Shown here: positions 41,839 through 62,126 of the stretch, one piece after another
Layout of the letters: every line of letters begins with the position of its first letter
How positions within the stretch are numbered: position 1 is the stretch's first letter
Sequence record: NC_042018.1
Direction: 5' to 3' (one strand)
Length of the DNA stretch: 64,000 bases
Made by a program: the position numbers and the translations under genes
Notes under the pieces: generated by a model
What the model saw: only the letters and a program-made list of their open reading frames with translations
Database searches by the model: none
Told to the model about the DNA's origin: nothing

Positions 41839-43518
41839 ATGACCGACATGTTTACTCCATGTAATAGCAACGACATCGATTTCAACAAGCTGGCACCGCA
41901 GACGTTCTATAAAGGTGATGAAGTTCGAGTGATTGTTGACCATGTGGTTAAAGAAGTGGAAGCGATGGTAACATCGACCATGGGCCCGAACGGTCGTCTG
42001 GCGGTAATCAGTTACGGTACCGAACCCAAGACCACCAAAGACGGCGTCACTGTAGCGCGCAGCATTAAGTTCACCAACGAAGCTGCCGAGTACATCAACC
42101 GTATCATCACTGAGCCGGCTCTGAAAACCGACGAAGAGTGTGGCGATGGTACCACGACAACAATCTTCTTAACCAAGCTGTTGTACGATCTGATGATTGA
42201 ACACAACACCTTCCTGAAACATAAACGCATTGAAGAAATCGTGCAGTTTATGATTCTTAAACTCAAAGAGATGGCTATTCTGCCGGACGTGAACAGCGAA
42301 GAGCTAGCAGCGTTGGCGTTAACCAGTAGTAACAACGACCAGGCCATTGCGACCACGGTAGTACAAACGTACCGTGATTCTGAAACCGGGTTCCCACACA
42401 TTGAGTTGCGTTCTGGTAGCCAGCCGCATGACGTGGTAGAACCTATTGCTGGTTTACCGCTGCGCATGAAGTTCGCTAACGCCGCGTTCAGTCGTTACGG
42501 TAACGGCGAGAACACCACGCTGACAGATTACGTGGCTGTGGGTGTGGATGCATTGTTGAGCGTTCCTAATGACGACGTTGGCAAGGTGTATCTCGAAGCG
42601 CTGAAAGAGCTGGCTGATAAATACCCGAACCGTCCTATTCTGTTAATTGGTCGCAGCATTGAAATCGATCTGTGCAACCTGGTGATGCAAGTTAACCGCC
42701 ACAAGAACTCCTGGATTATTCCGGTAACCACTGGGCTGGGCGGTACGCTGGCAACCTTGCTGTTGGGCGATATCTTAACGGTGCTGGGTGGTAAGCTGGT
42801 GACCTCGGTTAGCGAAGTGGCGTCTGTGGAATTAATCCCGTCGTCAGATGAGCTGGTGTTGGGTTCTGACCGTGGGTTGGTAACTAAGCTGACCGCTGAA
42901 TCTCAAGAGCGTGTGAATGCACGTATTGCAGAAGTTCAGGAAACCTTAAACCAGCTACAACAGGCTGACCGTTTCAGCTTACGTTCTCGTTTCACTGAAA
43001 GTCGTATCCGTGATTTGAAAGGCGAACTGATTGTTATCTATGTAGGTGGCGAAACCCAGTCCGAAGTCAAAGAGCGCATCGACCGTTTCGAAGACGTAAA
43101 CAAAGCGGTACGCAGTGCACTGGATAACGGCATCCTGCCGGGGTCGGGCTATGCCATGCGTGAACTGGGAACGGAAGTTATGCGTAACTTCGATAACGAA
43201 GAAGATCTCGAACTGGTGGGGGATATCTTCAATATCTGTTATCAACAATACTTCCGTCTATTTGGTTCGTTGGGTCTCTTTGATGCCCATCGTTATCTTG
43301 AACTGGTGGACCAAATGGATGTGGATACTCTGGGCAGTGAGTTCAGTCGTTACATTAACCTGGCAACGGGTGAAGAAGGTCTGCCGCATGAAATCGGTGT
43401 CTTCGATACTGCGTATGCTTCTATCACCGCATTGCGTGGTGGTCTGAAGACGGCGAAGATTCTGGCGCAAACCAGCACCATTCTGCTGGGTAGCAAACTG
43501 GGCTCTCGTCAATTCTAA
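41839..43518 (+). CDS. groEL: phage-encoded GroEL-like chaperonin
   Basis: STMGPNG, TTKDGVTVA, GDGTTT, GGET..EVKE..DR.ED, GILPGSG; 559 aa, no GGM tail. Confidence 0.92.
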   Translation: MTDMFTPCNSNDIDFNKLAPQTFYKGDEVRVIVDHVVKEVEAMVTSTMGPNGRLAVISYGTEPKTTKDGVTVARSIKFTNEAAEYINRIITEPALKTDEECGDGTTTTIFLTKLLYDLMIEHNTFLKHKRIEEIVQFMILKLKEMAILPDVNSEELAALALTSSNNDQAIATTVVQTYRDSETGFPHIELRSGSQPHDVVEPIAGLPLRMKFANAAFSRYGNGENTTLTDYVAVGVDALLSVPNDDVGKVYLEALKELADKYPNRPILLIGRSIEIDLCNLVMQVNRHKNSWIIPVTTGLGGTLATLLLGDILTVLGGKLVTSVSEVASVELIPSSDELVLGSDRGLVTKLTAESQERVNARIAEVQETLNQLQQADRFSLRSRFTESRIRDLKGELIVIYVGGETQSEVKERIDRFEDVNKAVRSALDNGILPGSGYAMRELGTEVMRNFDNEEDLELVGDIFNICYQQYFRLFGSLGLFDAHRYLELVDQMDVDTLGSEFSRYINLATGEEGLPHEIGVFDTAYASITALRGGLKTAKILAQTSTILLGSKLGSRQF

Positions 43519-46906: not shown

Positions 46907-46915
46907 GGTGTAATC

Positions 46916-47431
46916 ATGCGCTATTGGATTCGTCGTGACACGTTAAGTTATGAACTTAGCGAAGATGACATGTCGTTCATGGGCTATGTGGAAGTAACCA
47001 AACGTCCCGATGTCTATTCGGAAGTTTACTCGTGGTCCTTTGCAGAAGGCCGCTGGGTAGCTGACCGTGAAGCATTGCGTGTTGCTATTGCTCAGCGTCG
47101 TTTTGATGTTGAAACCGCCGGGGTGTATGTGGGTGAATACCGCATCGACACCACTGACCGCGGTAAGTTGATGTTAATGATGGCGGCAAGCCGTGCAGAG
47201 TCTCTGCCGGAAGGCACGTTGGTGTCGTGGAAAGTCTCCAATGATTCCTACACCTCGTTCACCCCTGCTCAAATCATTGCATTAAAGAACGAAGTGTGTG
47301 ACTACATCGGTCAGTGTTTTGAATACGAACGTTTGTTAGCGGACCGCATTATCCGCCAGGATTTTGATGTTGCTGAAATCACCGTTGGGTGGCCAAGTAA
47401 CGTCATTACTCTGCCTGGGGTAGCGGCGTAA
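46916..47431 (+). CDS. DUF4376-domain tail fibre assembly/accessory protein
   Basis: IAQRRFDVETAGV..IDT.DR, SWK..N..F, V..YIGQCF..ER; lies between two fibre genes. Confidence 0.75.
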   Translation: MRYWIRRDTLSYELSEDDMSFMGYVEVTKRPDVYSEVYSWSFAEGRWVADREALRVAIAQRRFDVETAGVYVGEYRIDTTDRGKLMLMMAASRAESLPEGTLVSWKVSNDSYTSFTPAQIIALKNEVCDYIGQCFEYERLLADRIIRQDFDVAEITVGWPSNVITLPGVAA

Positions 47432-47486
47432 TTTGTTGTCCGGTTCTGTTGGGAGAGCCGGGCAATTTCTTTTTATTGGTGATGGC

Positions 47487-49946
47487 ATGAAACCGATCAA
47501 TGAATTGGATGTATTTGTACCAGAGGTTCCTCTCTTAGAAGAATCAGATTTGGTAAAGGGCGGGGAACAAGGCCCGAGTAATGCTCAAGCACTGGCATTG
47601 GCTAGCCGTACCCATTTTCTCAATGAACGTCGTAAAGAACTCGAAACCGAACTCGACCGCATTGATACCGCACTCAGTGGTTTAGATGCTGATAAAGTTG
47701 GGGCCGATGCTAAAGGCACGGCAACCGGTTTGGTTGATGCGCACGTAAAAGATGCTGACCCACACACCCAGTATTTAACCGATGCCCGTGGTAAACTGTT
47801 GTTTGTGGACAAAACCACCGCCAACAAACCGAATGGGTATCTGCAGTTAGATGCCAACGGGAAACTGCCGGCCGGTGTTGTAACCAGCTTATCGGCACGC
47901 TACGTTATTGTGGCTGACGAAACAGAGCGACTGAAGTTAACAACCACAAATGACCTTACCATTGCAGCGCAGCAATCTGACGATACCCTGTATTACTTAA
48001 ACGCCGGGACTGACCCTTCTGTCAAGGGTAATTGGATTAAGGGTCAATCGGCTACGGTATCGGGCGTCGTATCTTTCTTTGGTCGTACCGGGGTAATTAC
48101 TGCTGAAAGCGGTGACTATACGGCTGACCAGATTAATGAAACGTTAACGCGGTTATTTGTTTCCCCTCAAGAGAAACAGACCTGGAACCAGAAACAGGAT
48201 AAGCTAGTTTCCGGTACCAACATTAAAACCTTTAAAGGACAGTCTTTGGTTGGGGCGGGCGACCTTTCATTCAACTATGCTGACTTTGGTGCGGCAGCTG
48301 AAATACACAAGCATGTGGCTTCGGATATCACTGACTTTAATGATAAGGTAGACGGGCGTGCTTCTTCTTTATTAAAGGCAGGCCAAAACATACAGCTCGT
48401 GGTTGATCCTACAACCAAAGCCGTTACCATTAATGCGGCACCACCTAATGCGGCTTCATTGTTTGCTTCGGTTGACCGAATGGGTTCGTCTGCAAACCAG
48501 ATGCACGTGATAAACTTCAACCAGGATATAACGTACAACCTGGAAGCGTATGCTTTGAAGTTAGAGAAGGGGTCGACTAACCAGGTGTATACCTTGGAAA
48601 CGTTTGATCCAACTTCTGCACCGTTCTTTAACTCTACCCAATATCTGACCTTTAACGGTGTTTTGGGTGTGGCGTATAACTGGACACCGACGCTGCGTCA
48701 AAACAAAACGCGTTATGAAATGGAATTCGATCCGAACGTTAATGCTTTATCACTGTTCTCTACAGCCGGTAAAAACATTATCCCGGTGATGGCAGGCAAT
48801 GGTGGGATTAACGGTTATGTGCCGTTTGCATCTTCGGAGTACAGTGCGGACTATACAGCATATCGTGCGTTCTCCAACCTCCAGGCTGCTAATGGTGCAT
48901 CAGACTGTTGGGCATCAGGTAAAGGCCAAGTTCCGTCTGCTGCTAACCCACAATGGATAGGTATCTCTTTGCCTGCGGGCGTTAAGATAACAGCGTACAG
49001 TTTTGTGAACCGTAGTGCAGGTGCGGTATCCACACCGTCTAAATATAAACTCCAGGGCAGTAACGATAAAACCACCTGGGATGACATTGAAGCGGTACGC
49101 TCTAACACTAACGATGCAGCGGCGTTTGAGTTCTTCCATTCAGCGAGACCTACCAAAGCCTATCAGCATTATCGTCTCTACATTACTGAACGTTATCCTA
49201 ACAATCCCGACTATGACTTTGTCGTGGTTTGGCGTTTACGGTTGTATGTAGAGAAACCGGTGGTGTTCCAGGGTGAGACCAGTGATGCTTTATACACACT
49301 GGACAGTAATAACGTATTGGTTCCGTTAACTGACATCTCTGACGCGGGTATTGAAGCACAGGGTATTTCGGTGGCTAAAAATATTCCACCGGCAAACCTG
49401 TTGGCTTATCCGTTGAAAAAGATTGTGGGACTGGAACCCTCTACCCTGAACGTCAAGCTTGTCCCGATGGAACAGATCGCCATCATGAAAGACCCGTTGG
49501 TGACGAAGCCGTTTAGTAAAATAAACGCCATGAACTACACCGCGGTCCTGTTGGAAAAGACCCGGTACGCTATCTCCCCTGACGGTGTTACCTTCTATAC
49601 TTACAACGGCGGTACGTGGACGTCATTAGGGGCGTTGAAGAACGACCTGGCGTCAGCGAAGAAATTGGCGGCTCAAGGTATGATGAACGGCTTGGCAACA
49701 GGGACTATCATGACCTTGTACACCCAGCTGGGGATTAGATTCACGGCGTTCAGTTTGGCCTACGGGATTTTCCCAACGGTAGCCAACGAAGTTATCTCGG
49801 TCGACCAAACGTTGTTGAGTGTGGATTTCGCGGATACGTGGAAGAAACAAACACCGGCTGAGGTAGAGATTCGTTACAGCTCCGGGAATATCTCCTTTAA
49901 AACGGTGGCAGCGGGAGACTACAAGCTAGTTTACCAAGTCGCCTAA
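47487..49946 (+). CDS. tail fibre protein with discoidin domain (paralog of 44516)
   Basis: Start reset to ATG 47487 (MKPINEL aligns with MKEITEV); same N- and C-termini; QWIGISL, YKLQGSND..W, YQHYRL. Confidence 0.8.
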   Translation: MKPINELDVFVPEVPLLEESDLVKGGEQGPSNAQALALASRTHFLNERRKELETELDRIDTALSGLDADKVGADAKGTATGLVDAHVKDADPHTQYLTDARGKLLFVDKTTANKPNGYLQLDANGKLPAGVVTSLSARYVIVADETERLKLTTTNDLTIAAQQSDDTLYYLNAGTDPSVKGNWIKGQSATVSGVVSFFGRTGVITAESGDYTADQINETLTRLFVSPQEKQTWNQKQDKLVSGTNIKTFKGQSLVGAGDLSFNYADFGAAAEIHKHVASDITDFNDKVDGRASSLLKAGQNIQLVVDPTTKAVTINAAPPNAASLFASVDRMGSSANQMHVINFNQDITYNLEAYALKLEKGSTNQVYTLETFDPTSAPFFNSTQYLTFNGVLGVAYNWTPTLRQNKTRYEMEFDPNVNALSLFSTAGKNIIPVMAGNGGINGYVPFASSEYSADYTAYRAFSNLQAANGASDCWASGKGQVPSAANPQWIGISLPAGVKITAYSFVNRSAGAVSTPSKYKLQGSNDKTTWDDIEAVRSNTNDAAAFEFFHSARPTKAYQHYRLYITERYPNNPDYDFVVVWRLRLYVEKPVVFQGETSDALYTLDSNNVLVPLTDISDAGIEAQGISVAKNIPPANLLAYPLKKIVGLEPSTLNVKLVPMEQIAIMKDPLVTKPFSKINAMNYTAVLLEKTRYAISPDGVTFYTYNGGTWTSLGALKNDLASAKKLAAQGMMNGLATGTIMTLYTQLGIRFTAFSLAYGIFPTVANEVISVDQTLLSVDFADTWKKQTPAEVEIRYSSGNISFKTVAAGDYKLVYQVA

Positions 49947-49994
49947 TTTTATGGTAGGTTCAATATTGCTCAGCCTCCCTTTCGGAGGCTGAGT
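49945..49994 (+). promoter_or_regulatory. late TATG motif followed by leader/terminator hairpin
   Basis: AATTTTATGGTAGGT, then stem GCTCAGCCTCC/GGAGGCTGAGT. Confidence 0.5.
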
Positions 49995-50021
49995 ACTTTC
50001 TATTTTTACAAGGCGATTCGT

Positions 50022-50891
50022 ATGGGCTTAAATCTTCGTTTTATGCCTTACACTGATGGGGATTCTGACGGGGTGGATATTTACCGAGCCACATCCAAGA
50101 CCGGTGAGCGTCAGCTCATGAAGAGTCTGGCCGCTGGGATTCATGAGTTTAGCGACCACAGTGTGGAAGCCAATAAAGTGTATTGGTACTGGATACTGAA
50201 CAAATCTGCCGCCAACGGAGACCGACTCAGCCAACCCATGAGTGCACCAACGTTCATTGATTTGGGCCCTGGCCCGAAGAAACTGCTACGTGGGGATTGG
50301 GATTTCGGTTACCTGGGGTATGTCCCGGTCGCGGATATGTTCACCTATGCTCAAGCACAGAGCGCAGCAGCCATTCAAGCAGCACCGGATGGCGGCACAC
50401 TGAACGGATTCCATAAGTGTGTAGTACGGGGACGGATTATTTACTTTGGGGATGTCATTTATTCTCGTACAGTAAACCGTACCACGGTAGGGAATGCTCT
50501 GTTAGCACAGGACAGCAATCCGTTAACCACAGCACCTCGTCTGGCGGTAAATGATTATGAGTACATCGTACGGTGCCCTTACTCTTCTACTTTATCTACT
50601 ACTGCGGTTGTGGGTACGGGTGACGGGTTGGATGGTACCATCAAACTCAGTGAAGTCGGCATGCTAGCGTCGCTTATTCTGGATGCAGATACTGCTGGTA
50701 AGCTTAGTGGGAATAAGCTGGGTGATCTCGCTAACAATGGGTTATCAACCTTTTATTTCTCTAATACGTACGCTGCTAACAATGTTGTGAACGTGTTCAG
50801 TCTGGTTGCTGATGCGTCTATCGGACCTGCCAGTGACATGACAGGGAACCGTCCATTCTGGCCTGTCTTCGAGTTAGTGCTACACGAATAA
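50022..50891 (+). CDS. putative virion protein, FN3-like + GPGP + lectin-like PVxEL family
   Basis: VDIYR, YWYW, DLGPGPKKLLRGDWDFG, C-terminal FWPVFEL. Confidence 0.7.
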   Translation: MGLNLRFMPYTDGDSDGVDIYRATSKTGERQLMKSLAAGIHEFSDHSVEANKVYWYWILNKSAANGDRLSQPMSAPTFIDLGPGPKKLLRGDWDFGYLGYVPVADMFTYAQAQSAAAIQAAPDGGTLNGFHKCVVRGRIIYFGDVIYSRTVNRTTVGNALLAQDSNPLTTAPRLAVNDYEYIVRCPYSSTLSTTAVVGTGDGLDGTIKLSEVGMLASLILDADTAGKLSGNKLGDLANNGLSTFYFSNTYAANNVVNVFSLVADASIGPASDMTGNRPFWPVFELVLHE

Positions 50892-50917
50892 GGCTGTTAA
50901 ACATACAGGTGGATTAA

Positions 50918-52669
50918 ATGAGTTTACCGAGTCGGCAACTCTTTTTAGACCGTTTTATGGAAGTAAACCGTATACGGTATAAAAACGATCCTGAAGTTTT
51001 GGACCGGTTGAACAAGCTCACTGTAAAAGACATTGTCTTTGAGGGGCTGACCGAAGACCCAAACCGACCTGGGGGGATGATTTCCAACTTCTCGGTACCT
51101 GCCAAAGCCATTGAAGCCTATGCGCAACGATGGATTCCGGTAGACATCAAGAGCAAACACATCATCAATCCAGCAAACGTTACCAATGTCCCGACATTGA
51201 ATGACGTCATTGCTGCGCAAGCCCGCGGGTTGTTTACCTATCAGGATAATGGGTCAACCAAACTAGCGATCGTTATGGCCTTCCGTCAAGATATCCCTGT
51301 GGAGAACTTGGCGAAAGAAGTTACCAAAACCTTAAACCGCACAACCAGTTACGTCATTAAAGACGGTGACCTGCAAATAAACTTCAACGACTCCACGGAT
51401 GATTATAGATTATTTGATGTTCGTAATGAGACCATCAGCGGTGAAGTAGCAGTGATTCGTCTCCCCAGTAACCTGTTAAAAGGAACCTGGTGGTTAGGCT
51501 ATCTGGGTGAGTGGACACCTGATGAAGTTATCCGTCCCAGTATTCTGGCCGAAATGGTTGGGGTGCCGAATGGGATTAACCCAGACGTGGAATGGTTAAA
51601 GTTCTCAGTAGAGGGCCGCATCATTTATGTTGCCAAACGACCCATTAGCAAAATGGTCAGTTATGGTAGCCTGTCGGGGTTAAACCTGGTAGACGGTAAC
51701 CGTATTGTTGATATCGATCATGAACAGTACAAGATTCGACTGTTAACCGCAGAAGACTCTGACACGTCCGACTGGAACCGGGTGATGTACCGTGTTTCTG
51801 AAGATGACCCCACAGGAACTTTCTGGGAAGAGTTCACCGACCAAGAGTTAGGTATCAATAACTCTGATAACGGTGGGATTACCCTGTCTCGTTCTGAAAG
51901 TGGTGGGTCGGTCTACGGTCGTGGTCGTTACAGCATCACGTCTCTGCAATCTGTTATTAAAACCGCTTCTTCTCCGGCAACGGGCTGGCGTCCTGTTCTG
52001 GAACTTATCGGTGTTGACAATATTGAATACGCACCGACAGCACACTTAACCGGCGTGATTCCTGTTGAACCTGAGATGTCAGGCGGAGCATCGGGTGACT
52101 TTGTTTATGCCGTAGGTCCTGTGGCTTCACGCATGACGGAACACACCGACTTTAACGGTTACCGTTATGATGATGTCGTCTTTGCGGTGCAGGGTGTTGA
52201 GGTCTATCAGAACCAGTTAGTGCCGGCAACGGAAATTGTTGACTACAGCTACGTCGCGGTCTTCAACGTTATGTCGGTAGAGGTTAAACCTGACACGGTC
52301 GTGAAACCCACGGAAATTACAGGGTCGAGAATTCAGGACGTTGTAATTGTACCAAATACCGTTAAGTCAACGGTTGACCCTGACTGGCTGGAGTCTGACA
52401 ATAACACCGCCGTGTCGAACGGAATCATTTCAGCCGTTGCAAAACGCGGTGTTATCACTTTGTTACCAACTTCGGGTTACGCTAATACCGCTGACTCAAA
52501 CAGCGTGGTTGGGGCCGTAACGAAGAAAGGTAGCTATGTCATTGCCGCTGATTTTGTAATTGAAGAGATTACGTTTAACGGCATCGACAACTGGATTCCA
52601 GAAACAGACTACGGCGATCTGTTTGAAGAAGAAGTGTATAATCCTGACACGACATTTATGTCTTTCTAA
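50918..52669 (+). CDS. putative virion protein L1: scaffold domain + lectin-like domain + tail
   Basis: RQLFLDRF N-domain; WLKF..EGR, YGRG...GWRPVLE; C-terminal PETDYGDL. Confidence 0.7.
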   Translation: MSLPSRQLFLDRFMEVNRIRYKNDPEVLDRLNKLTVKDIVFEGLTEDPNRPGGMISNFSVPAKAIEAYAQRWIPVDIKSKHIINPANVTNVPTLNDVIAAQARGLFTYQDNGSTKLAIVMAFRQDIPVENLAKEVTKTLNRTTSYVIKDGDLQINFNDSTDDYRLFDVRNETISGEVAVIRLPSNLLKGTWWLGYLGEWTPDEVIRPSILAEMVGVPNGINPDVEWLKFSVEGRIIYVAKRPISKMVSYGSLSGLNLVDGNRIVDIDHEQYKIRLLTAEDSDTSDWNRVMYRVSEDDPTGTFWEEFTDQELGINNSDNGGITLSRSESGGSVYGRGRYSITSLQSVIKTASSPATGWRPVLELIGVDNIEYAPTAHLTGVIPVEPEMSGGASGDFVYAVGPVASRMTEHTDFNGYRYDDVVFAVQGVEVYQNQLVPATEIVDYSYVAVFNVMSVEVKPDTVVKPTEITGSRIQDVVIVPNTVKSTVDPDWLESDNNTAVSNGIISAVAKRGVITLLPTSGYANTADSNSVVGAVTKKGSYVIAADFVIEEITFNGIDNWIPETDYGDLFEEEVYNPDTTFMSF

Positions 52670-52682
52670 AAGAGAGTAAATC

Positions 52683-53579
52683 ATGGGCATTCGTCTCGAA
52701 ATTACTAACAAAAACACCGTACCGGTAACGATTAACGTTTACCGTGGTGATCAAGAACTGGACCGTGCTAATCTCCCGCCGGCAATTGGTCAGATTGCCA
52801 ACACCACCGATAACCCGGCTATCTTTAATGATAACACGGTGGTGCAAGGCAAAACGTATTTCTACGTGTTTGAAACCGTGGGACCGAAAGATCGTGCCTA
52901 CACCCGTAACTTCAAAATCCAGGCGCTGGAAACCCGCGGTCCGGGTGATAACGATCTCAAAATCGGCAACCGCAACCTGGGGTATTACGGCAACCTGTCA
53001 GCCGGTGCGATTACTGATGCCGCGTCTCTGTGCTCTGCGATCGGTTTGACCGGCCACACCGTTAACTCCTTTGCGACCTGGTACAAATTTGCGCGTAAAG
53101 GCAAAGTGCTGTTTGTGCCGAACGCACACATTGCTCGCGGTGGGATGTCGTTCAACAAACTGAAGACGCTCGGTCTGGTGGACGGCAAAACCATCACCAT
53201 CGGTGCCTTTAAATATAAAGTGCGTCTGATGAGCGGTTGGGATGACAGCAAAGCGCTGGATGCGAACATGGTGGTAGGTACTAACTACAGCATGGAAGAT
53301 TACCTGGACAACTCTTGCGAATTCAACGACCTGGTATATCCGCTGGTGAAGTGGACACCTAACGGTCAGCATTTGCCAGGTCTGTTCCAGCAGACAGTTA
53401 CGGCGGTAACGTCTAACACGCTGCCGCTGTGCAAGGATAACGACGGTACAAAATTTGTGCGCCGCACTATGGCGGCTGATACCCGTGCCGCTGTTTCCAC
53501 CATTGCTATCGATAATACACCAGACGCTGTAAACGCTTCTTACAGCCTGCTGCCGGTTCTGGAACTCATCGAGGGGTAA
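52683..53579 (+). CDS. putative virion protein A1 (FN3-like + PVLEL family)
   Basis: INVYR..ELDR..LP, ETRGPG, WYKFARKGKV, LLPVLELIEG; paralog of 57179. Confidence 0.7.
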   Translation: MGIRLEITNKNTVPVTINVYRGDQELDRANLPPAIGQIANTTDNPAIFNDNTVVQGKTYFYVFETVGPKDRAYTRNFKIQALETRGPGDNDLKIGNRNLGYYGNLSAGAITDAASLCSAIGLTGHTVNSFATWYKFARKGKVLFVPNAHIARGGMSFNKLKTLGLVDGKTITIGAFKYKVRLMSGWDDSKALDANMVVGTNYSMEDYLDNSCEFNDLVYPLVKWTPNGQHLPGLFQQTVTAVTSNTLPLCKDNDGTKFVRRTMAADTRAAVSTIAIDNTPDAVNASYSLLPVLELIEG

Positions 53580-53583
53580 TCTC

Positions 53584-54516
53584 ATGTCATTAGTGGTGCA
53601 ATGGGAAGATATCCCAGATGCCGCTGGTTACGAAATCTATCGGTCTAAGACGAAGTTCTCTTTGAGCACGTTGCCGACCGATAAGGTTAGTGTGCCGGCT
53701 GGTGCAACGGAATACGAATACACCGACGTGGATCGCCAAACCGTTTACTGGTTTGCTATTCGTACCCTCGACGCTAACGGAGCAGGAACCTTTGGTCAAG
53801 TCTTCCCGTTAGGTTATTTCCCGGACACCGGTCCTGGTCCTTCTACATTGTTACGTGGGGACTGGGCGTTTGGTTTCTTTGGGGAAGTTAGCCCGAGTCT
53901 GGTAGGGACATCGGACGAAGTGTATGCTCAACTGACGCAGACAACGGCGGATAACCCCATCAAGCCTACGGTAAAAGATTTTGTTTACCTGAAATGCATT
54001 GTGAACGGGAAGATTGTCTTTATTCCTTCGTCTCCGTTTGCAACCTATGCGGTGATGGGAACGACGGCGCATTACATCTCAATAGGTGCAACGGGCGATG
54101 CTGGGTTAGATGACAACACCGCACCGGTTATCAAACTCAAGGGACGGGATTACCGTCACCGCTTACCAAGAGCAAGCAACAGCAAATCCACAGCGGGAAC
54201 TGTTAATCTGGATGTGGTATCAGACGATGTGTTAATGTCTGAGGTCGGTATGTTAGCGGCGCTCCTGTTATCGACCGCTGAAACAGACGTGTCGAAGAAC
54301 CCAGACAACCGTAATGCCGCACCGTTGCATTATCGTCTCGGTGACTATACCGATCTTGCCAACGTCATTACGCTTCATCGTTTCGCTAACTACGGTGGCA
54401 ACAACAACTCGCTGTACAGTTACGTTGTTACGCCAAGCACGGGCGCTATTGCAAACAAGGTCTGGTATTACACCGACCCGAAAGCCTACCTGCCGGTATT
54501 AGAACTGCTCTTCTAA
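53584..54516 (+). CDS. putative virion protein B1 (FN3-like + PVLEL family)
   Basis: PDTGPGPSTLLRGDWAFG, KCIVNGKI, YLPVLEL; paralog of 58072. Confidence 0.7.
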   Translation: MSLVVQWEDIPDAAGYEIYRSKTKFSLSTLPTDKVSVPAGATEYEYTDVDRQTVYWFAIRTLDANGAGTFGQVFPLGYFPDTGPGPSTLLRGDWAFGFFGEVSPSLVGTSDEVYAQLTQTTADNPIKPTVKDFVYLKCIVNGKIVFIPSSPFATYAVMGTTAHYISIGATGDAGLDDNTAPVIKLKGRDYRHRLPRASNSKSTAGTVNLDVVSDDVLMSEVGMLAALLLSTAETDVSKNPDNRNAAPLHYRLGDYTDLANVITLHRFANYGGNNNSLYSYVVTPSTGAIANKVWYYTDPKAYLPVLELLF

Positions 54517-54526
54517 GGAGAACATA

Positions 54527-55387
54527 ATGGGTGTGAAGATTCAGTGGATTGACCCCAATATCGATCCATTAGATACAGTAGAAATCTGGCGTTCTCCCAC
54601 AAAAGCCGGTGCGCCGGTTAAGATTGGGAGTGTGGCTGGCGACGTGCGTGAGTATCAGGACGATACAGCTGAACGAAACAAAGTTAGTTGGTACACACTG
54701 ACTTCAGTGCGTGGTCAAGGCAAAGCCATCAGTACACCGTTTCCGGTAGGTAACTATCCTGATACGGGTCCAGGCCCTAAAACCATCATGCGTGGTACGT
54801 GGGAGTTTGGTGTGTTCGGTGAAGTGGATGCTAACCTGCTTCCGGGTTTCAGTGAAATCCAGGAGAAGGTGGGTATCGCTCCGAACAATTCCGTGGTCCG
54901 ATTCTACAAATGGATTGTTAACGGCCGCATCATCTTTATTCCATGGGGACCGTACAGCAGTGCGTTTGGTACTACTATCACTGCTGCCGGTATCATGGTG
55001 CCTCAGGGTAAAACGAATGAGGCGGGTTTGGTGATTGATCGTGAGGGGTACGGCTACAACATTCGTCCTCCTTACGCGACCAACAACTTCACCAGTGAAC
55101 TAACGACCATTGCTGACGGTGGGGATGAAACCCTGAAGCTTTCAGAGTTGGCTGCAATTATGACCAGTCTGGTTGGGATGGACACGAAGTTAATGTACGG
55201 TGACATGAAGTGGGGTGATATTTCTCCTGCTGCAGCGGGCGGTAACTATTACCTGACCAACACCTACATTAACGCCAACAACTCCACCCTGGTAGCAAAC
55301 ATCGCAGCGTCACCGGCGTTAGTGAGATCAGGTAGTACATCTTCTGCTCGTGGCTTGTGGCCCGTGTACGAACTGCTGTTAACATAA
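54527..55387 (+). CDS. putative virion protein C1 (FN3-like + PVYEL family)
   Basis: NIDPLD, PDTGPGP, KWIVNGRI, LWPVYEL; paralog of 59047. Confidence 0.7.
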   Translation: MGVKIQWIDPNIDPLDTVEIWRSPTKAGAPVKIGSVAGDVREYQDDTAERNKVSWYTLTSVRGQGKAISTPFPVGNYPDTGPGPKTIMRGTWEFGVFGEVDANLLPGFSEIQEKVGIAPNNSVVRFYKWIVNGRIIFIPWGPYSSAFGTTITAAGIMVPQGKTNEAGLVIDREGYGYNIRPPYATNNFTSELTTIADGGDETLKLSELAAIMTSLVGMDTKLMYGDMKWGDISPAAAGGNYYLTNTYINANNSTLVANIAASPALVRSGSTSSARGLWPVYELLLT

Positions 55388-55395
55388 TGGGGACA

Positions 55396-55419
55396 CCTCC
55401 TCCCTTCACTGGGAGGAGG
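55396..55419 (+). terminator. terminator-like hairpin
   Basis: CCTCCTCCC-TTCACT-GGGAGGAGG between the two cassettes. Confidence 0.65.
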
Positions 55420-55440
55420 GTCTTATATAACTGATGGCAA

Positions 55441-55449
55441 AATGTTATG
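55441..55449 (+). promoter_or_regulatory. putative late promoter (TATG)
   Basis: AATGTTATG. Confidence 0.55.
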
Positions 55450-55498
55450 TTCCTGATTTCTTTATCCCTTATTATCCGTAAACGGAGAGGTACATGAC

Positions 55499-57163
55499 GT
55501 GAGTATAAACAGGCGTCAGCTCTTCCTGGACAGGTTCCTTGCCTATAACAGGTCGCGCTATAAAGATAACCCTGACGCACTCAAACGACTGGACAGACTC
55601 ACCTTCGAGGACATGGTTTTCGATGGCATTGCTATTGATACCAGCAAAGCCGGTGAGCTTCGTCGTCGCGTCGCTAACTTCCATGCCGATGCGCAAATGA
55701 TGGAAGGTGTTGATCAACGCTGGACGTGCACCAGTCTGTTGCATCGCAAAGTCATCCCCACTGAAAACTATATCAACAGCACGCCGTTTGCCTCTCTGGA
55801 AGATTTTAAGAAAGTTAACCTGCAAGGTGTGTATCAGTATTTAGATGACGGTGTTCCGGTATTGGGTGTGGTACTTGCTACCGACTCGTCTAAAACCGAA
55901 GACGTTACCCCGGAGTTGATTACACTCCTGAACACGGTATCTCGTTACCAACTGTTAACCACCGAGCTGTCAATTGAAGCTGCTGACCGTGACCACTTCC
56001 CAATGCACTTCACCTACATGGGTGATACCATTGTGGGTCGCATTACTGTCATCCGTCAAGCTGCAGACCGACCTGCGGTAGGTAACGAAATTCTTGGTTA
56101 TTACGGTGAGTTCCCGTCCGACTACTTAATCTCCAGCGGTGTATTGGCTGAGATGTTAGGGTTGGCTGGTGATAAACTGATTACCGGTGCAGAGACAGTG
56201 CCGTGGTTGAAGTTTGCTTACTTCGGTAAACTCCTGCATGTGTCAAAGCGTCCTATCAGTAAAAACATGACGTGGACGGCGCTGAACGACATGGGGTTAG
56301 TTGACGGCTCCCGTATTATTCAGTTAGGTAATAAGCGTTATCGGGTACGTTTATTACACGGAGCAGCAAATGACTTCGGTAATGAATGGAACGACCTCAT
56401 CTATCGCGTTCATTATCAAGATCCAACTAATACGTTCTGGGAGCGATTCACAGACGAAGAGATGGGGCTTGGTTGGGATGCAGTTACCAACAAATGGTAT
56501 CGTGATGGGTCCATTGCCTTTACCCAGGATGCAGTCGATGCTACTACGGTGGTAACACGTGGTGGCGGGCAGGATGGTGCGTCACTGACCGTGACCGGTA
56601 CCGTAGCGAAAACCACGACCAGCAAGTATTACGGTTGGCGACCGGTGTTGGAATACATTGGAACAAGCGGAATAGATACACCGTACATTGCGGATATCAG
56701 TTCTCCACTGTCGTTGGATTTCTCATCTGAAATCAACACCGACTTTACTGGGGTCTTGCGTCCGTTTGGGTTTGACGTGGAAATGGTGCCGGATGCGAAG
56801 ATTGTACCTAGCGCTGTTAACAACGTTACCCTGTTTGCGGTGAAGTTGGATTCTGCTTCGCTGGTAGGTAGTGCAGAAGCTCCGGTTGTCACCAAAATCG
56901 AAAACAACTCGGTGAAATTCCCACGTGATGTCAGACTGGATAAAATGGTCCCGTTAACGTGTGACATCTATTCACTGGAAGAGCCGGACGATACAGTTAG
57001 ACTGGCTACGGTCGACATGGGTGACATCACTCCACGTCAAATTCGACCAACCATTCCATTAGCGGCACAGGACCTCGGTGACATTGCAACCAAACAAGTC
57101 AACCCAGATGCTGATGGGAAATACAACGGTCTGTTTACCCATAACGGCACGCTACATTATTAA
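55499..57163 (+). CDS. putative virion protein L2: scaffold domain + lectin-like domain + tail
   Basis: GTG after GGAGAGG; RQLFLDRF, WLKFAY.GK, TRGGG...YGWRPVLE, QDLGDI; paralog of 50918. Confidence 0.7.
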   Translation: MSINRRQLFLDRFLAYNRSRYKDNPDALKRLDRLTFEDMVFDGIAIDTSKAGELRRRVANFHADAQMMEGVDQRWTCTSLLHRKVIPTENYINSTPFASLEDFKKVNLQGVYQYLDDGVPVLGVVLATDSSKTEDVTPELITLLNTVSRYQLLTTELSIEAADRDHFPMHFTYMGDTIVGRITVIRQAADRPAVGNEILGYYGEFPSDYLISSGVLAEMLGLAGDKLITGAETVPWLKFAYFGKLLHVSKRPISKNMTWTALNDMGLVDGSRIIQLGNKRYRVRLLHGAANDFGNEWNDLIYRVHYQDPTNTFWERFTDEEMGLGWDAVTNKWYRDGSIAFTQDAVDATTVVTRGGGQDGASLTVTGTVAKTTTSKYYGWRPVLEYIGTSGIDTPYIADISSPLSLDFSSEINTDFTGVLRPFGFDVEMVPDAKIVPSAVNNVTLFAVKLDSASLVGSAEAPVVTKIENNSVKFPRDVRLDKMVPLTCDIYSLEEPDDTVRLATVDMGDITPRQIRPTIPLAAQDLGDIATKQVNPDADGKYNGLFTHNGTLHY

Positions 57164-57178
57164 TTCATAGGAACAGTC

Positions 57179-58069
57179 ATGGCTATTCTGATTAAATTCA
57201 ACAACCCCAATGCTGATGACATTACCCTGAATGTCTATCGAGCAGATGCTGAAATGGACCGCAGCAAACTTCCGGCTCCGCTGGCTACCTTAACCGGTCG
57301 CCCAACTGAGTTCCTGGACAAAACTGCTGTGCAGGGCAAAACCTACTTCTATATCTTCGAAGCTATCGGTAACAACGACCGTGACATCTCTCGCAACATT
57401 AAACTGATTGCAGCAGAAACACGCGGTCCAGGCAACAACATTCTGAAAGAAGGCACTCGTGAGCTAGGCCACTATGACGTGATGCCGGCGTCTGACCTGC
57501 TGGATTACCAACAGCTGTTTGCTAAGATGGGTAACCCTGCTGGCTTTACAGCGAGTAACTTCACGAACTGGGTTAAGTTTGCACGCAAAGGGAAAGTCTT
57601 CTTTGTGCCTTCATCACCTATTGGGGTAGCTATGCCTCAGGCAATGAAAGATGCCGGCTTTATGGGTGACGGTAAGATTATTGAACAGAACGGGTTCAAA
57701 TACCGTGTTCGTTTAGCACGCGGTTGCAGTGAAACCGATGCCGAAGCGACGACGTTCCTGGCGGATAAAGTCGCGTTGACTAACTACGACATGGATACAT
57801 TTGATATCAGTTGTGAATTCAACGATCTGGTGTACCCGCTGTTAAACGTTACGCCGTTAAAACAACGGTTGTCAAATAAACTCAATGGCAGCATCAAAAC
57901 GATAACAGGTAGTCGCTTTGTTCCTGTAAAGGAAGCATTGGCTGATTCGTCTCCGGTGTCCCGTACCTATTACGACGCAACCGATCGTACCCAGGCGACG
58001 TGTCTTCGTGCTATTGCTCTTAACGTGGCTTGTGCGTTCTGGCCGGTATTAGAACTGATTGAGGGCTAA
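57179..58069 (+). CDS. putative virion protein A2
   Basis: LNVYR..EMDR.KLP, ETRGPG, WVKFARKGKV, FWPVLELIEG. Confidence 0.7.
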   Translation: MAILIKFNNPNADDITLNVYRADAEMDRSKLPAPLATLTGRPTEFLDKTAVQGKTYFYIFEAIGNNDRDISRNIKLIAAETRGPGNNILKEGTRELGHYDVMPASDLLDYQQLFAKMGNPAGFTASNFTNWVKFARKGKVFFVPSSPIGVAMPQAMKDAGFMGDGKIIEQNGFKYRVRLARGCSETDAEATTFLADKVALTNYDMDTFDISCEFNDLVYPLLNVTPLKQRLSNKLNGSIKTITGSRFVPVKEALADSSPVSRTYYDATDRTQATCLRAIALNVACAFWPVLELIEG

Positions 58070-58071
58070 TT

Positions 58072-59037
58072 ATGGCAGTCATTATTAGTTGGAAGCCCAT
58101 AGCCAACGCCGACAAGATTCGCGTGTATCAATCAACTACTCCGTTCACGTTTGCAGACATTGCCGGGAACCCCGCTATTACCATGGTAGAAGTGCCCGGG
58201 ACTGATGTTAGCAAAGCTGTGACCATCCCACGTAATAACGTGCACTGGTTCGCGTTGTCAGCGGTTGATGCAGACGGTCTGGAGTTGTTCTGTGAAGTGT
58301 TCCCAATGGGTAACTTCCCTAACACCGGACCTGGGCCGGATACCATTCTTCGTGGTAACTGGGATTTCGGTTTGTTTGGTGAGCTTTCTACCGAACAGCT
58401 GTTTACTAATGCTGAACTAGGTGCAGGAATTGTTGCAGCAGGTGCGACCGTTGATAACGTTACCAGCGGCAACCGTATCACCAAGTGGTTTAAGTGTATC
58501 GTTAACGGGAAGATTCTGTTTATCCCAAATAACTACGTTTATCTCATGCCTGAAGGTGGCGATAAACCGACCCTGTTAGCCCAGCGTAAGTTGAGCATGA
58601 CCGCCGGGTTTCCGGGTGCAGCTGTTCTAAGCAAGAACGGCAATGATTTCATGTATCGTTTACCGTCCTATACCCGAAGTGTGCCTGCTGGGCAAATCAC
58701 GCAGCCAGCCTCTGACGATATCTTGAGTTCTGAAGCCGGGATGATTGCGGCATTAGAAACAGGGGCATTGAAAATTGGGCGAAACAGCGTGGGGGTTGGG
58801 CGCACTCCGTATAACGTGTGGGATAACCTCGGTGATATGGTCTTGGGTTCAACTGGTAACACCCCGCTGGCAACGGCGAACTATTATTCAGTAAGTTCGA
58901 ACATGCAATGGGGTGTGCACTGCATGATTCCTCGTGATGGGTCGTACATGACCTACGGGATTCAGCAGTGGTTCCAGAACAGTAGCGTCTCCTACGGTAA
59001 CTTCTACGTCATGCCGATTCTTGAATTGGTCTTCTAA
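58072..59037 (+). CDS. putative virion protein B2
   Basis: PNTGPGPDTILRGNWDFG, KCIVNGKI, VMPILEL. Confidence 0.7.
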   Translation: MAVIISWKPIANADKIRVYQSTTPFTFADIAGNPAITMVEVPGTDVSKAVTIPRNNVHWFALSAVDADGLELFCEVFPMGNFPNTGPGPDTILRGNWDFGLFGELSTEQLFTNAELGAGIVAAGATVDNVTSGNRITKWFKCIVNGKILFIPNNYVYLMPEGGDKPTLLAQRKLSMTAGFPGAAVLSKNGNDFMYRLPSYTRSVPAGQITQPASDDILSSEAGMIAALETGALKIGRNSVGVGRTPYNVWDNLGDMVLGSTGNTPLATANYYSVSSNMQWGVHCMIPRDGSYMTYGIQQWFQNSSVSYGNFYVMPILELVF

Positions 59038-59046
59038 GGATATCCA

Positions 59047-59901
59047 ATGAGCATTACTATTAACTTTCGTAACCGCAACATTGATGCCCTGGATGAGATT
59101 CGTATTTACCGTACGGAGAACCGGGGTGTTGCACCAACCCTGATTGCGACCATTACCAACGACAAGGTCTTTTACAAGGACACAACAGCCCAGTACAACC
59201 AACTGTACTTCTATCAGACCGGTGCGGTGTATCAAGGTATCGAAAACCGCAGCGAACTGTTCCCGGCTATTGCGTTCCGTAATAATGACAACGGTCCGGG
59301 TCCACAAAAGCTCATTCGCGGTAACTTTGAGTTTGGGCTGTTTGGTCCGGTGGACATGAACGACCTGCCGTCGTTTGATGCGGTGTCGGTATCAGCAGGC
59401 GTTACTCGTAACGTTACTGGTAACCCCACGGCGGCGCTGAAGTGGTGTATTAATGGTAAAATCATTTACACCTTTAATGCGGCGTTCCACACGGGTATCT
59501 CCAAAGACAACCTGAAGAAGCTGTTCATTGCTGCAAACAAAGAGTCGGACTTCTTCAGTATCGACTTAGCGGGGAAAACCTTTAAGGTACGTCCGCCGTT
59601 TGCCACTACGCTGCGTGGGGCCATCGTAGGGACCGGGGAAACCTATCCCCTGACGTGGTCAACGGATGTTCAGCAAAGTGAAGCAGGCGCGATTATGCGC
59701 AGCTATTTGGGGTCTGCTGCTGTCAAGGCCGGCGATCGGATGTATGACCTGGCTCCGTTACCGGCGGGTGGTTTCTGGACTAACACCTACTACGATCTGA
59801 ACACGTACTACATGTTCTATCTGGACGGCAACACAAGCGCTTATCGTGCATCCTCTGGTACGGGTCCTTTCTATCCGGTGTATGAGTTGATGCTTGATTA
59901 A
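59047..59901 (+). CDS. putative virion protein C2
   Basis: NIDALD, DNGPGPQKLIRG, KWCINGKI, FYPVYEL. Confidence 0.7.
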   Translation: MSITINFRNRNIDALDEIRIYRTENRGVAPTLIATITNDKVFYKDTTAQYNQLYFYQTGAVYQGIENRSELFPAIAFRNNDNGPGPQKLIRGNFEFGLFGPVDMNDLPSFDAVSVSAGVTRNVTGNPTAALKWCINGKIIYTFNAAFHTGISKDNLKKLFIAANKESDFFSIDLAGKTFKVRPPFATTLRGAIVGTGETYPLTWSTDVQQSEAGAIMRSYLGSAAVKAGDRMYDLAPLPAGGFWTNTYYDLNTYYMFYLDGNTSAYRASSGTGPFYPVYELMLD

Positions 59902-59916
59902 TAAACTGGAGACTTA

Positions 59917-60501
59917 ATGAAAATTCCAAACATGCAGTTGTTTTTGGACAGGTTCATTAGCGTTAACAGAGTCAGGTATCGGCAACAGCCGAGCGTTTTG
60001 GCTATCCTCGACACATTGACATTAAAGAACGTTATCTTCTCGAAGGTGCGTTCTGATATTGATGCGTTCGGGGAACTGGTGCGTACCGTGGACATGTATG
60101 TGCCAAAAGTCATGAAGGCCATGGACCAAAGTTGGTTACCTGCCTACTACACCACCCCGCGTATCACCAACATGGTGACCACCGATGTGCAGGATGAAAA
60201 TGACCTCATCACGCTCGAGGTACCGGGGTTCTACTTTTACAAGGACCGTAACAGTAAAGTGCAGGGATGTGTGGTGGTGCCTGCCCAGATTAATTCGGAA
60301 GACATTGCGGATTACGTCAAGGACATGGTGAAGAATGCAAATGCTTACCAAATCAATGACGACCAAATCTCGGTAGCCAGTAACTTCTCTGAAGTTATTG
60401 TAGACACCCCCGCCATCTACCAACGACTCAAGCTTGTCCTTTCTCTGCGTGATTTCTCATTTAATATCCCCGACACGGACTACGGGGATTTGGGGGTCTG
60501 A
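59917..60501 (+). CDS. putative virion scaffold-family protein
   Basis: MQLFLDRF...IPDTDYGDL. Confidence 0.7.
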   Translation: MKIPNMQLFLDRFISVNRVRYRQQPSVLAILDTLTLKNVIFSKVRSDIDAFGELVRTVDMYVPKVMKAMDQSWLPAYYTTPRITNMVTTDVQDENDLITLEVPGFYFYKDRNSKVQGCVVVPAQINSEDIADYVKDMVKNANAYQINDDQISVASNFSEVIVDTPAIYQRLKLVLSLRDFSFNIPDTDYGDLGV

Positions 60502-60509
60502 ATTTTATG
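60501..60509 (+). promoter_or_regulatory. putative late promoter (TATG)
   Basis: AATTTTATG. Confidence 0.55.
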
Positions 60510-60541
60510 GACCGATTATTATAACACCGAGGTAATTTATT

Positions 60542-61177
60542 ATGGGAATGCTTGACCAACGTCAGCTATTTCTGGATAAGTTCGTTGCGTATAACAAACA
60601 ACGTTATGCCTCCGAACCTAACAAAGTTGCGGCGTTCGATAACTTATCGTTGAGCGACGTCCAGTTCGGTACCATCACCAAGACGGAAGATAACGGCGTC
60701 TACAAACGCTCTTACGACCACGTTAACTCAACGTCTCGTAACTTCACGTCTGACCCGCAGCGTTTCAATGCAGCTAACCTGGCCAGCCAGTGGGTAACCA
60801 CAGCCAGCCAGATGGCGGACATTGCCGATGTGCGTGCCGCACCGCCGGGCATCTATTTCTACCTGGATGCTCTGAACAACAATGCCCGTACCCTGTGCGT
60901 GGTATATCCGTACGACTTCGATACCAGTGACGATGTCGCGTTCAAAGATCAAATCTTCACCATGATCAACGGCGCGTGTAAATATGCACTGGACAAATCG
61001 ATCTTCGATATCCAGCCGTGGACTCAGTCTGACCCGACGGACAAAATGACTTACGTTCAAGACGAAGTCATCGCGGGTTGGGTGCTGACCATCAAAGGTA
61101 CTCAGGATACGCTGGTTATTCCGGATACCGACTACGGCGATCTGATTAACGAACAAAACGGTGGCGTTGCGCCGTAA
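60542..61177 (+). CDS. putative virion scaffold-family protein
   Basis: RQLFLDKF...IPDTDYGDL. Confidence 0.7.
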   Translation: MGMLDQRQLFLDKFVAYNKQRYASEPNKVAAFDNLSLSDVQFGTITKTEDNGVYKRSYDHVNSTSRNFTSDPQRFNAANLASQWVTTASQMADIADVRAAPPGIYFYLDALNNNARTLCVVYPYDFDTSDDVAFKDQIFTMINGACKYALDKSIFDIQPWTQSDPTDKMTYVQDEVIAGWVLTIKGTQDTLVIPDTDYGDLINEQNGGVAP

Positions 61178-61195
61178 TAACGTTTGTTACTGACT

Positions 61196-61222
61196 AGGTT
61201 AACCCCGCGATGGGGTTAACCT
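61196..61222 (+). terminator. intrinsic terminator
   Basis: AGGTTAACCCC-GCGAT-GGGGTTAACCT followed by a T-run. Confidence 0.75.
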
Positions 61223-61250
61223 TTTCTCTTTTCTGTTAAGGACATTTGAT

Positions 61251-62126
61251 ATGGACGCAAACCTGCAACTCTTCCTTGACAAGTTCATTGAGGTGAATAA
61301 GCAGAAGTATGCTGATGAACCTGAAGTGCTTGCTCTTCTGGAAGGATTGACACTGGCGGATGTTGTTTTCGACAGCATCGAAATCGATGAGAGTTTAGGC
61401 GAAGGCGGTCGTATTGCCAGCTTCCATTCTCCTTCCCGTAAATTCAATGCCCCGCAACAACAGTGGCTTTGTTCAACCCTCCAGGGTAAGAACGTCGTTA
61501 CCTTTACTGATGCAAAAGTGTTTGATGACAAAGCATCGGTAAAAGCACTGACGGCACCAGGTATCTACCTGCACAAAGCAGGCGACGCCACAGCGGTATC
61601 GGTATTGACAGCTGAAGACGTTGCTGATGTTGACACTGCAACGCAAAACATTATTGCTGCCTTAACCGGTGCGGTAAATTATGAACTAAAGGTTGAAGAC
61701 CTGTTGATTCCAACCTTTACCCTCGGAACAGATTTCGAAGGTCTGGTCAGTTCACACTGCATCGAAGACACGTTTAACGTGTACTTTATCCCGAAAGCGG
61801 TAGCTCCGTCTGAACCGGGTGAAGGTGGTGAAATTGATCCAGGTACTGGGGGCGGTGAAACAGGCGGTGGTGAGACCGGTGGTGAACCTGAAGTGGATCC
61901 CAACGAACCGGTAATCACTCCAGAAATGGAAGCCGAAGATAAAGCCCTGGCCGACCCAACTGCCGGCGGCATTTATTCTGACGTAGGCGACAAAGGGTTT
62001 GGTGTATTAACTGTACCGCGTGAAATCTCTGAAGAGACAGCCAACATTGCTACCATCACTGGTATGACGTTTGGTCTGGTAGGCGCTGGTTCTCTGACGG
62101 TGGAGACTTTAAATGAAAACGCGTAA
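61251..62126 (+). CDS. putative virion scaffold-family protein with Gly/Glu/Pro linker
   Basis: LQLFLDKF N-domain; PGTGGGETGGGETGGEP linker; small C-terminal domain. Confidence 0.7.
   Translation: MDANLQLFLDKFIEVNKQKYADEPEVLALLEGLTLADVVFDSIEIDESLGEGGRIASFHSPSRKFNAPQQQWLCSTLQGKNVVTFTDAKVFDDKASVKALTAPGIYLHKAGDATAVSVLTAEDVADVDTATQNIIAALTGAVNYELKVEDLLIPTFTLGTDFEGLVSSHCIEDTFNVYFIPKAVAPSEPGEGGEIDPGTGGGETGGGETGGEPEVDPNEPVITPEMEAEDKALADPTAGGIYSDVGDKGFGVLTVPREISEETANIATITGMTFGLVGAGSLTVETLNENA

Follow-up and report, generated by a model that had tools for sequence, protein, structure and literature searches.

Why would a giant bacteriophage carry nine similar genes in a row, the longest of which carry, at the end of their shared domain, a motif reminiscent of the proteins hypermutated by diversity-generating retroelements (DGRs)? 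The genes in question, gp196–gp204 of Erwinia phage vB_EamM_RisingSun (hereafter RisingSun), are consecutive + strand open reading frames at positions 50022–59901 of a 64,000-nucleotide (nt) stretch of NC_042018.1, referred to here as the window. The array corresponds, at 100% identity, to positions 174022–183901 of that record, the complete RisingSun genome of 235,108 bp, in which all nine products (100% identical to the record) are annotated as "(putative) virion structural protein". We consider it probable that gp196–gp204 are modular virion-surface binders, that is, a hard-wired, duplicated library of a DGR-type domain without the retroelement.

All nine proteins possess one common core domain of ~200 amino acids (aa). 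Each matches the protein family phrog_1062 at E values of 1e-30 to 1e-49, and their paralogy is therefore far beyond chance; pairwise core identities are 20–44%. In the nine-way alignment, the invariant residues are the G..G of the first strand, the K and G of K..NGK/GR, the R of Y..R, and the P and E of the terminal P(V/I)(L/Y/F)E(L/Y) motif. Seven members carry GPG at aa 81–86, after an N-terminal β-sandwich; in the two long members, gp197 and gp201, RG is followed 21–27 residues further on by GWRPVLE(L/Y). Column entropies, computed from family alignments of 73 and 76 sequences, mark the terminal motif as the most conserved part of the domain (1.0–1.5 bits) and the ~70 aa before it as the most variable and most indel-rich (2.6–3.4 bits vs 1.6–2.3 bits elsewhere). 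Across the nine paralogs, Asn, Tyr, Thr, and Ser together account for 37% of the last 45 residues before the motif vs 24% of the remaining core. A preliminary description, made from the letters of the window alone, had anticipated these features: its gene coordinates were exact and its shared motifs are the invariant columns, and the N-terminal FN3-like domain with a GPG linker in seven members, the RG...GWRPVLE ending in the two long members, and the divergent, Asn/Tyr/Thr-rich segment before the motif were all borne out. The nine genes and the two long-member segments are as follows.

50022–50891, + strand: gp196, 289 aa, A-type short member; FN3/Ig-like (immunoglobulin-like) sandwich at aa 1–~80, GPG at aa 82, core at 50268–50885; peptides detected in crude-lysate mass spectrometry (MS) (PMC6034870 Table 4).
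50918–52669, + strand: gp197, 583 aa, long L-type member; N-domain of ~180 aa at 50918–51457, core at 51458–52015, C-terminal extension of 220 aa; matches phrog_21620 and phrog_1062.
51920–52006, + strand: RG...GWRPVLEL segment of gp197, aa 335–363; by alignment, it occupies the position of the variable repeat in DGR-linked homologs.
52683–53579, + strand: gp198, 298 aa, B-type short member; core at 52941–53576; AlphaFold2 (AF2) model with a predicted local distance difference test score (pLDDT) of 94.7; full-length BLASTP match (E 7e-23) to the DGR variable protein of locus L023.
53584–54516, + strand: gp199, 310 aa, A-type short member; core at 53836–54513; Asn-rich pre-terminal segment.
54527–55387, + strand: gp200, 286 aa, A-type short member; core at 54770–55384; 5 peptides in lysate MS.
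55499–57163, + strand: gp201, 554 aa, long L-type member; N-domain at 55499–56053, core at 56054–56665 (AF2 pLDDT 93.1; predicted template-modeling score, pTM, 0.90), C-terminal extension of 168 aa.
56558–56656, + strand: RG...GWRPVLEY segment of gp201, aa 354–386; by alignment, it likewise takes the place of the variable repeat in DGR-linked homologs.
57179–58069, + strand: gp202, 296 aa, B-type short member; core at 57428–58066; 44% core identity to gp198.
58072–59037, + strand: gp203, 321 aa, A-type short member; core at 58330–59034.
59047–59901, + strand: gp204, 284 aa, A-type short member; core at 59296–59898; 6 peptides in lysate MS.

The same domain is hypermutated in other phages. In 88 loci encoding relatives, we searched for further copies of the sequence at the domain 3′ end. 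In seven of these, all DGR loci of uncultured phages (L023, L024, L043, L051, L057, L085, and L089), a repeat of 86–108 nt lies ~550 nt downstream, with bAvd and reverse transcriptase (RVT_1) genes between and after the repeats. Mismatches between the copies fall predominantly at adenines of the downstream, template copy (10/10, 10/10, 15/20, 18/20, 7/11, 12/14, and 13/14 in the seven loci). The variable repeat (VR) comprises the last ~30–35 codons before the conserved end, the RG...GWRPVLE stretch, and the variable codons are flanked by a conserved R(V)(Y/F)RG on one side and by the closing GWRP(V/C)LE on the other. The core domain likewise forms the beginning of gp52 of Faecalibacterium phage FP_Mushu (NC_047913), a protein annotated as 'Hoc-like head decoration protein'; comparing its VR (L099 4379–4478) with the template repeat (TR, 2325–2423), 11/11 differences are at template adenines, and annotated Avd and reverse transcriptase (RT) genes adjoin. 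The FP_Mushu DGR and its activity have been published (PMC5883640); the papers on this DGR recognized only Ig-like repeats in the target and left the VR-bearing domain unassigned.

A hidden Markov model (HMM) whose only input was the nine RisingSun cores matched seven DGR variable proteins, namely FP_Mushu gp52 and those of six uncultured phage loci, over model positions 2–206 of 208 with E values of 7.6e-15 to 3.5e-42. Pairwise, the gp201 core aligns end to end with the L085 target (E 2e-13), and gp198 aligns over its full length with the L023 target (E 7e-23), which has the identical FN3+GPG+core layout. This homology supports the assignment of the RisingSun core to a type of domain that DGRs diversify, the VR of the homologs occupying the corresponding position, in keeping with the term 'DGR-target-like' used in the preliminary description; judged by alignment, the VR-equivalent stretch of gp197 and gp201 is the very segment picked out there. 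At L023 (84–1819; IMGVR_UViG_3300027365_000009, a 150-kb contig), two family members lie in tandem, Mtd_N+core followed by FN3+core, with Avd, TR, and RT following only the second; one and the same phage thus combines paralogy with DGR diversification.

The core domain is widespread. Searching 1.8 billion cluster representatives with gp201 by phmmer returned 979 matches at E <= 1e-3, nearly all via residues ~190–390, and a word-indexed search with the DGR-linked alignment returned 633 relatives; among the best-scoring 120 of these, no lectin-type Pfam label bridging to FGE-sulfatase was present, the sole Pfam label being one PF03406. The VR-bearing domain of the FP_Mushu DGR target can now be assigned to a family without a Pfam model, whose size lies between several hundred and about a thousand proteins. 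Its members carry the core by itself, in proteins ~200 aa long, or have it behind the Mtd N-terminal domain, behind FN3-like sandwiches, or in tandem, with 3 to 7 matched stretches in proteins of 1.3–2.6 thousand residues. Pfam Mtd_N is found in 12/76 sequences (E 5e-5 to PDB Mtd chains, over the N-terminal 45 aa only); Bordetella phage BPP-1 was not among the tblastn matches of a relative that bears Mtd_N. Two tandem-type relatives scanned against Pfam join the core to Kelch or Laminin_G_3 modules, and other fusion partners are Mtd_N, Phage_fiber_2, and Ig repeats. Among cultured phages, the core domain is almost confined to phiKZ-like giant phages; in phiKZ itself it is the N-terminal part of gp83, which matches the nine-core HMM at E 3.6e-22.

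RisingSun lacks the retroelement. The preliminary description had noted that the window holds no RT; none is annotated among the 243 features of the complete genome either, and HMMs of five DGR RTs and five Avds returned nothing from its six-frame translation at E <= 10, while the RTs of two control loci were recovered by the RT HMM search at E 1e-137 and 1e-168. A sensitive blastn search of the array against the whole 235-kb genome found no template repeat, only a conserved N-terminal core stretch common among the paralogs, and the window likewise holds no repeat of any array segment. Phage Joad, whose array region is 99.6% identical, differs from RisingSun at 44 array positions (38 transitions, 6 amino acid changes) with no adenine bias. 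Of these differences, 42 are in the outermost paralogs (18 in gp196 and 24 in gp204) and are mostly synonymous transitions, and six inner genes are identical, a pattern that suggests patchy recombination. Orthologs of single paralogs in related contigs of ~230–240 kb are 86–96% identical, with changes evenly distributed and no pre-terminal hot spot; at greater divergence, the pre-terminal part changes ~1.5x faster than the remaining core. On these observations, the copies are fixed, and each is conserved in its own right. A VR/TR pair, RT/Avd genes, and adenine-directed variation between isolates, which mark an active DGR target, are all absent from the RisingSun array. The idea of a fixed library diversified by duplication, put forward in the preliminary description, fits these nine diverged copies.

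How the nine copies arose can be read in part from their order. Core identities define three subtypes: L (gp197 and gp201, 40%), B (gp198 and gp202, 44%), and A (gp196, gp199, gp200, gp203, and gp204, 30–38%). The gene order, A / L B A A / L B A A, together with DNA-level echoes within the array spaced at 4496–4497 bp, points to an old block duplication of ~4.5 kb that would have shaped the array. An AlphaFold model of gp198 (73-sequence alignment; pLDDT 94.7) places an N-terminal β-sandwich before an α/β domain. Foldseek searches with this two-domain model returned matches for the sandwich only, to β-glucan-recognition (β-GRP) and FN3 domains (probability 0.98–1.0, E no better than 0.037). 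In the long members, a ~185-aa N-domain takes the place of the sandwich; it recurs in the three genes that follow, with 17 invariant columns, and the array likely continues functionally into these genes, whose products would be partners in the same assembly. The following features belong with the array.

55396–55419, + strand: terminator-like hairpin with a 9 bp stem, 7 GC; it lies in the sole long intergenic gap, between the two duplicated gene blocks.
59917–62126, + strand: gp205, gp206, and gp207, of 194, 211, and 291 aa; without the core domain, with the ~185-aa N-domain in common with gp197 and gp201; gp206 and gp207 peptides in lysate MS.

A phiKZ gp131-like fiber-docking domain was considered as the identity of the N-domain of gp197, gp201, and gp205–207, and was rejected (hhalign probability 0.1%, disjoint PHROG families). 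A short C-terminal peptide, IP.TDYGDL, is common to gp197, gp205, and gp206.

The sole conserved DNA motif reported for RisingSun, taken there as a sign of co-regulation (PMC6034870, Fig 6), falls inside the A-type genes gp196, gp199, gp200, gp203, and gp204 (50265–50310, 53830–53875, 54767–54812, 58327–58372, and near 59293) and matches A-type coding sequence for the GPG linker and the first strand of the core. As a point of annotation, this 'regulatory DNA motif' coincides with conserved coding sequence of five paralogs.

Taken together, we propose a working model in which each protein would consist of an anchoring module and one ~200-aa α/β domain predicted to bind ligands. The anchor would be an FN3/Ig-like sandwich with a GPG linker in seven members and the ~185-aa N-domain, as in gp205–207, in two. 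The putative binding domain would close with a strand that is strongly conserved and reads GWRPVLE in gp197 and gp201; the domain belongs, by homology, to the family that DGRs hypermutate in other phages just before this conserved end. Diversity in RisingSun would instead derive from nine diverged, individually conserved duplicates, including those of the old ~4.5-kb block duplication, and the copies differ most in the pre-terminal part, the presumed equivalent of the DGR VR. We infer that the domain serves to bind ligands present on the host or in the host environment, with each paralog having its own specificity.

Some members of the array are virion-associated. MS of a RisingSun crude lysate identified peptides of gp196, gp200, and gp204, and also of gp206 and gp207 (PMC6034870 Table 4). 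In phage SPN3US, 'paralog family B' comprises gp83, gp138–154, gp161, and gp237 (Thomas et al. 2016, Ali et al. 2017; PMC5105663, PMC5694885); by proteomics, all of its 20–21 members are present in tailless particles, and they were called head proteins of unknown function. SPN3US gp146, 147, 149, 150, 152, and 153 match the FN3+core profile over their full length (E 1e-54 to 1e-63), gp145, 148, and 151 match the core, and gp145–153 overall match RisingSun-type profiles at E 1e-17 to 1e-63. Two elements of the preliminary description are not supported here: the family is not undescribed, being the published SPN3US paralog family B, and its placement 'on a jumbo-phage tail' conflicts with the presence of SPN3US gp146–153, the short-member homologs, in tailless head particles. 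By analogy with these homologs, found in tailless heads, we favor the head or neck over the tail as the site where the short members of RisingSun would be displayed. In small phages, homologs carry the core behind tail-fiber N-termini (Mtd_N, Phage_fiber_2); the anchoring module, and not the binding domain, probably sets the virion location. The phiKZ record bears the note 'structural head protein' on gp83, to which we give little weight because the same note stands on proteins that the phiKZ tail atlas places in the tail.

Several points weigh against reading the array as a set of surface binders, among them the weakness of the fold assignment. Because the two-domain gp198 model had yielded matches for the sandwich only, the gp201 core was modeled alone (pLDDT 93.1, pTM 0.90). 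Foldseek found no PDB chain at E < 1e-3 with this model (best E 0.033), and template-modeling (TM) scores were 0.17–0.38 on the query and <= 0.50 on the target. The first 19 matches include PvdO, FGE, PorK, the Bd2740 fiber tip, the Legionella Lcl C-domain, and CarF, among which we take PvdO, FGE, PorK, and the Lcl C-domain to be folds of the FGE/C-type-lectin type. Bd2740 is a C-type-lectin variant resembling Mtd (PMC10769870); Mtd itself and TvpA are not among the Foldseek matches. By sequence profile, with both the proteins and family profiles searched, the core has no Pfam or NCBIfam model and no PDB match, and Pfam FGE-sulfatase, DUF1566, and DUF6273 as well as PDB C-type-lectin (CLec) chains gave no match at permissive thresholds. 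The CLec-like fold of the preliminary description is thus weakly supported: the top structural matches are FGE/CLec-type, but their E values are >= 0.03, their TM scores are 0.2–0.5, and the Pfam families expected to match do not; on the predicted model, a C-type-lectin/FGE-like fold of the core is likely but not demonstrated. Beyond the fold, six of the nine paralogs went undetected in the published MS, for which the sample was a crude lysate, and the long-member N-domains of RisingSun and SPN3US are unrelated. Two abundant family B members, gp160 and gp141, were labeled 'Head ejection?' by the SPN3US authors, and phiKZ gp83 figures in neither the tail atlas of 29 proteins nor the capsid model.

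The location of the array, directly downstream of two long F5/8 type C fiber-like genes and a DUF4376 gene (gp193–gp195), would suit nine receptor-binding proteins on the tail or baseplate, a receptor-sensing arsenal, as would the Mtd_N or Phage_fiber_2 N-termini of DGR-linked and other small-phage homologs and the classical role of phage DGR targets as tail-fiber tips. We nevertheless regard a tail location as unlikely: the SPN3US homologs of the short members persist in tailless particles of two tail mutants, phiKZ gp83 is missing from the tail atlas and carries a head-protein note in the phiKZ record, the N-domain of gp197 and gp201 is unrelated to the fiber-docking N-domain of phiKZ gp131–135 (hhalign probability 0.1%), and the FP_Mushu homolog has been read as a Hoc-like head decoration.

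A head location by itself would also accommodate internal or cementing components, such as ejection proteins or capsid stabilizers, in which the shared domain is structural. SPN3US family B consists of head proteins, two abundant ones bearing the ejection label, and many of the phiKZ minor capsid proteins lie on the inner capsid surface. Against this, the labeled gp160 is without the core domain (gp141 is cut at the locus edge and falls outside the scan), and the list of SPN3US proteins that the prohead protease processes contains none from family B. The core is DGR-hypermutated in several phages, a process known for ligand-binding surfaces, and it is fused to fiber N-termini, Ig repeats, and the adhesion-type modules Kelch and Laminin_G_3. 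An internal or cementing role is, on this evidence, improbable. The further suggestion in the preliminary description, that a DGR located elsewhere in the RisingSun genome acts on the nine genes as its remote targets, draws on the homologous domains being DGR targets in other phages with RG...GWRPVLE as their VR, but it is refuted for this genome, which is complete and has no annotated RT, no six-frame RT/Avd match, and no array repeat outside the array, and in which differences from Joad are mostly synonymous transitions without adenine bias and orthologs lack a pre-terminal hot spot.

Returning to the surface-binder reading of gp196–gp204, a more general form of it can be offered only tentatively, and we hold it to be rather less likely than the reading for RisingSun itself. 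The head-associated paralog families of phiKZ-like giant phages, with up to ~20 members in SPN3US, may be repertoires of DGR-type, lectin-like binders displayed on the capsid or neck, in which many fixed specificities have replaced, or obviated, retroelement hypermutation; the domain would then represent a new class of the C-type-lectin/FGE superfamily.

The surroundings of the array are as follows. Upstream, at 44516–49946, gp193 and gp195 encode paralogous fiber-like proteins of ~800 aa with one F5/8 type C (discoidin) domain each, and the DUF4376 protein gp194 lies between them. A GroEL-type chaperonin gene, gp190 (41839–43518), is positioned a few kb upstream of the fiber and paralog genes. 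At 38523–40748, thymidylate synthase is annotated as two pieces, gp186 and gp188, with the GIY-YIG homing endonuclease gene gp187 between; this looks like a thyA gene split by an intron or endonuclease. Strong terminator-like hairpins with 9–12 bp stems are present at 49967–49995 (before gp196), 55396–55419 (in the gp200/gp201 gap), and 61196–61222 (after gp206), and would divide the region into the units gp196–200, gp201–206, and gp207 onward. A sigma-70 promoter scan was uninformative, returning fewer matches than in shuffled sequences.

The gene family as such was known already, from the SPN3US paralogs and as RisingSun structural genes; the DGR-linked functional reading seems to be new. 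A link of the family to DGR targets or lectin-like folds is absent from PMC5105663, PMC5694885, and PMC10052503, and none was found in the literature searched. A comparative survey found no DGR-type C-type-lectin (FGS) domain in jumbo phages (PMC7824862), a statement of absence that is qualified by a jumbo-phage core domain homologous to DGR targets. SPN3US family B, larger than any other paralog family known from one phage genome, has been without a proposed function since 2016, and the DGR link provides a checkable hypothesis for it: the proteins would be surface binders, with the pre-terminal segment as the binding site.

Among known systems, SPN3US paralog family B, the PHROG families 1062/3589/16120/21620, and phiKZ gp83 constitute the same protein family as the RisingSun array. 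SPN3US and RisingSun are alike in their tandem arrays, in the repeated order of their blocks, and in encoding virion proteins of unknown function. SPN3US gp145–153 (L100 3519–13657) form three blocks of one long (~480 aa) and two short (~330 and ~300 aa) members, whereas RisingSun has nine core-bearing members with two L,B,A,A blocks; the head location was tested in SPN3US only, and the long-member N-domains differ between the two phages, as noted above. The SPN3US long members and gp160 have another C-terminal peptide in common. A second comparison is with phiKZ gp131–gp135, the hetero-hexameric fiber base (PMC13250141), tandem paralogs with a common N-terminal docking domain and differing C-terminal parts; the arrangement is analogous to that of gp197, gp201, and gp205–207, with N-domains that are unrelated and fall in different PHROG families. 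The working model also resembles T4 Hoc, in which an Ig/FN3-like module would similarly accompany an exposed binding function on the head, and the FP_Mushu homolog is so annotated; the likeness would be one of layout, and the RisingSun sandwich is single and N-terminal.

A further comparison is with the DGR targets themselves. FP_Mushu gp52 and the targets at the uncultured phage loci are homologous to the RisingSun core over its whole length and have the same terminal strand, and the L023 target also has the FN3+GPG+core layout; these targets possess a VR, a cognate TR, bAvd, and an RT, all of which RisingSun lacks, its copies being fixed. In the CLec/FGE targets, Bordetella phage BPP-1 Mtd, Treponema TvpA, and Legionella LdtA/DUF1566, an α/β domain bears the variable region at its C-terminal end, followed by a short invariant closing strand, as is the case here, and some core-family members bear the N-terminal domain of Mtd. 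At ~200 aa, the RisingSun core is larger than a minimal CLec domain, as represented by the 109–131-residue CLec chains of Bd2740 and Lcl. The same scaffold thus appears to be diversified in two ways, by retroelement hypermutation in mid-sized phages and by gene duplication in giant phages; if this is true, fixed binder repertoires would represent an evolutionary alternative to the DGR that uses the same scaffold.

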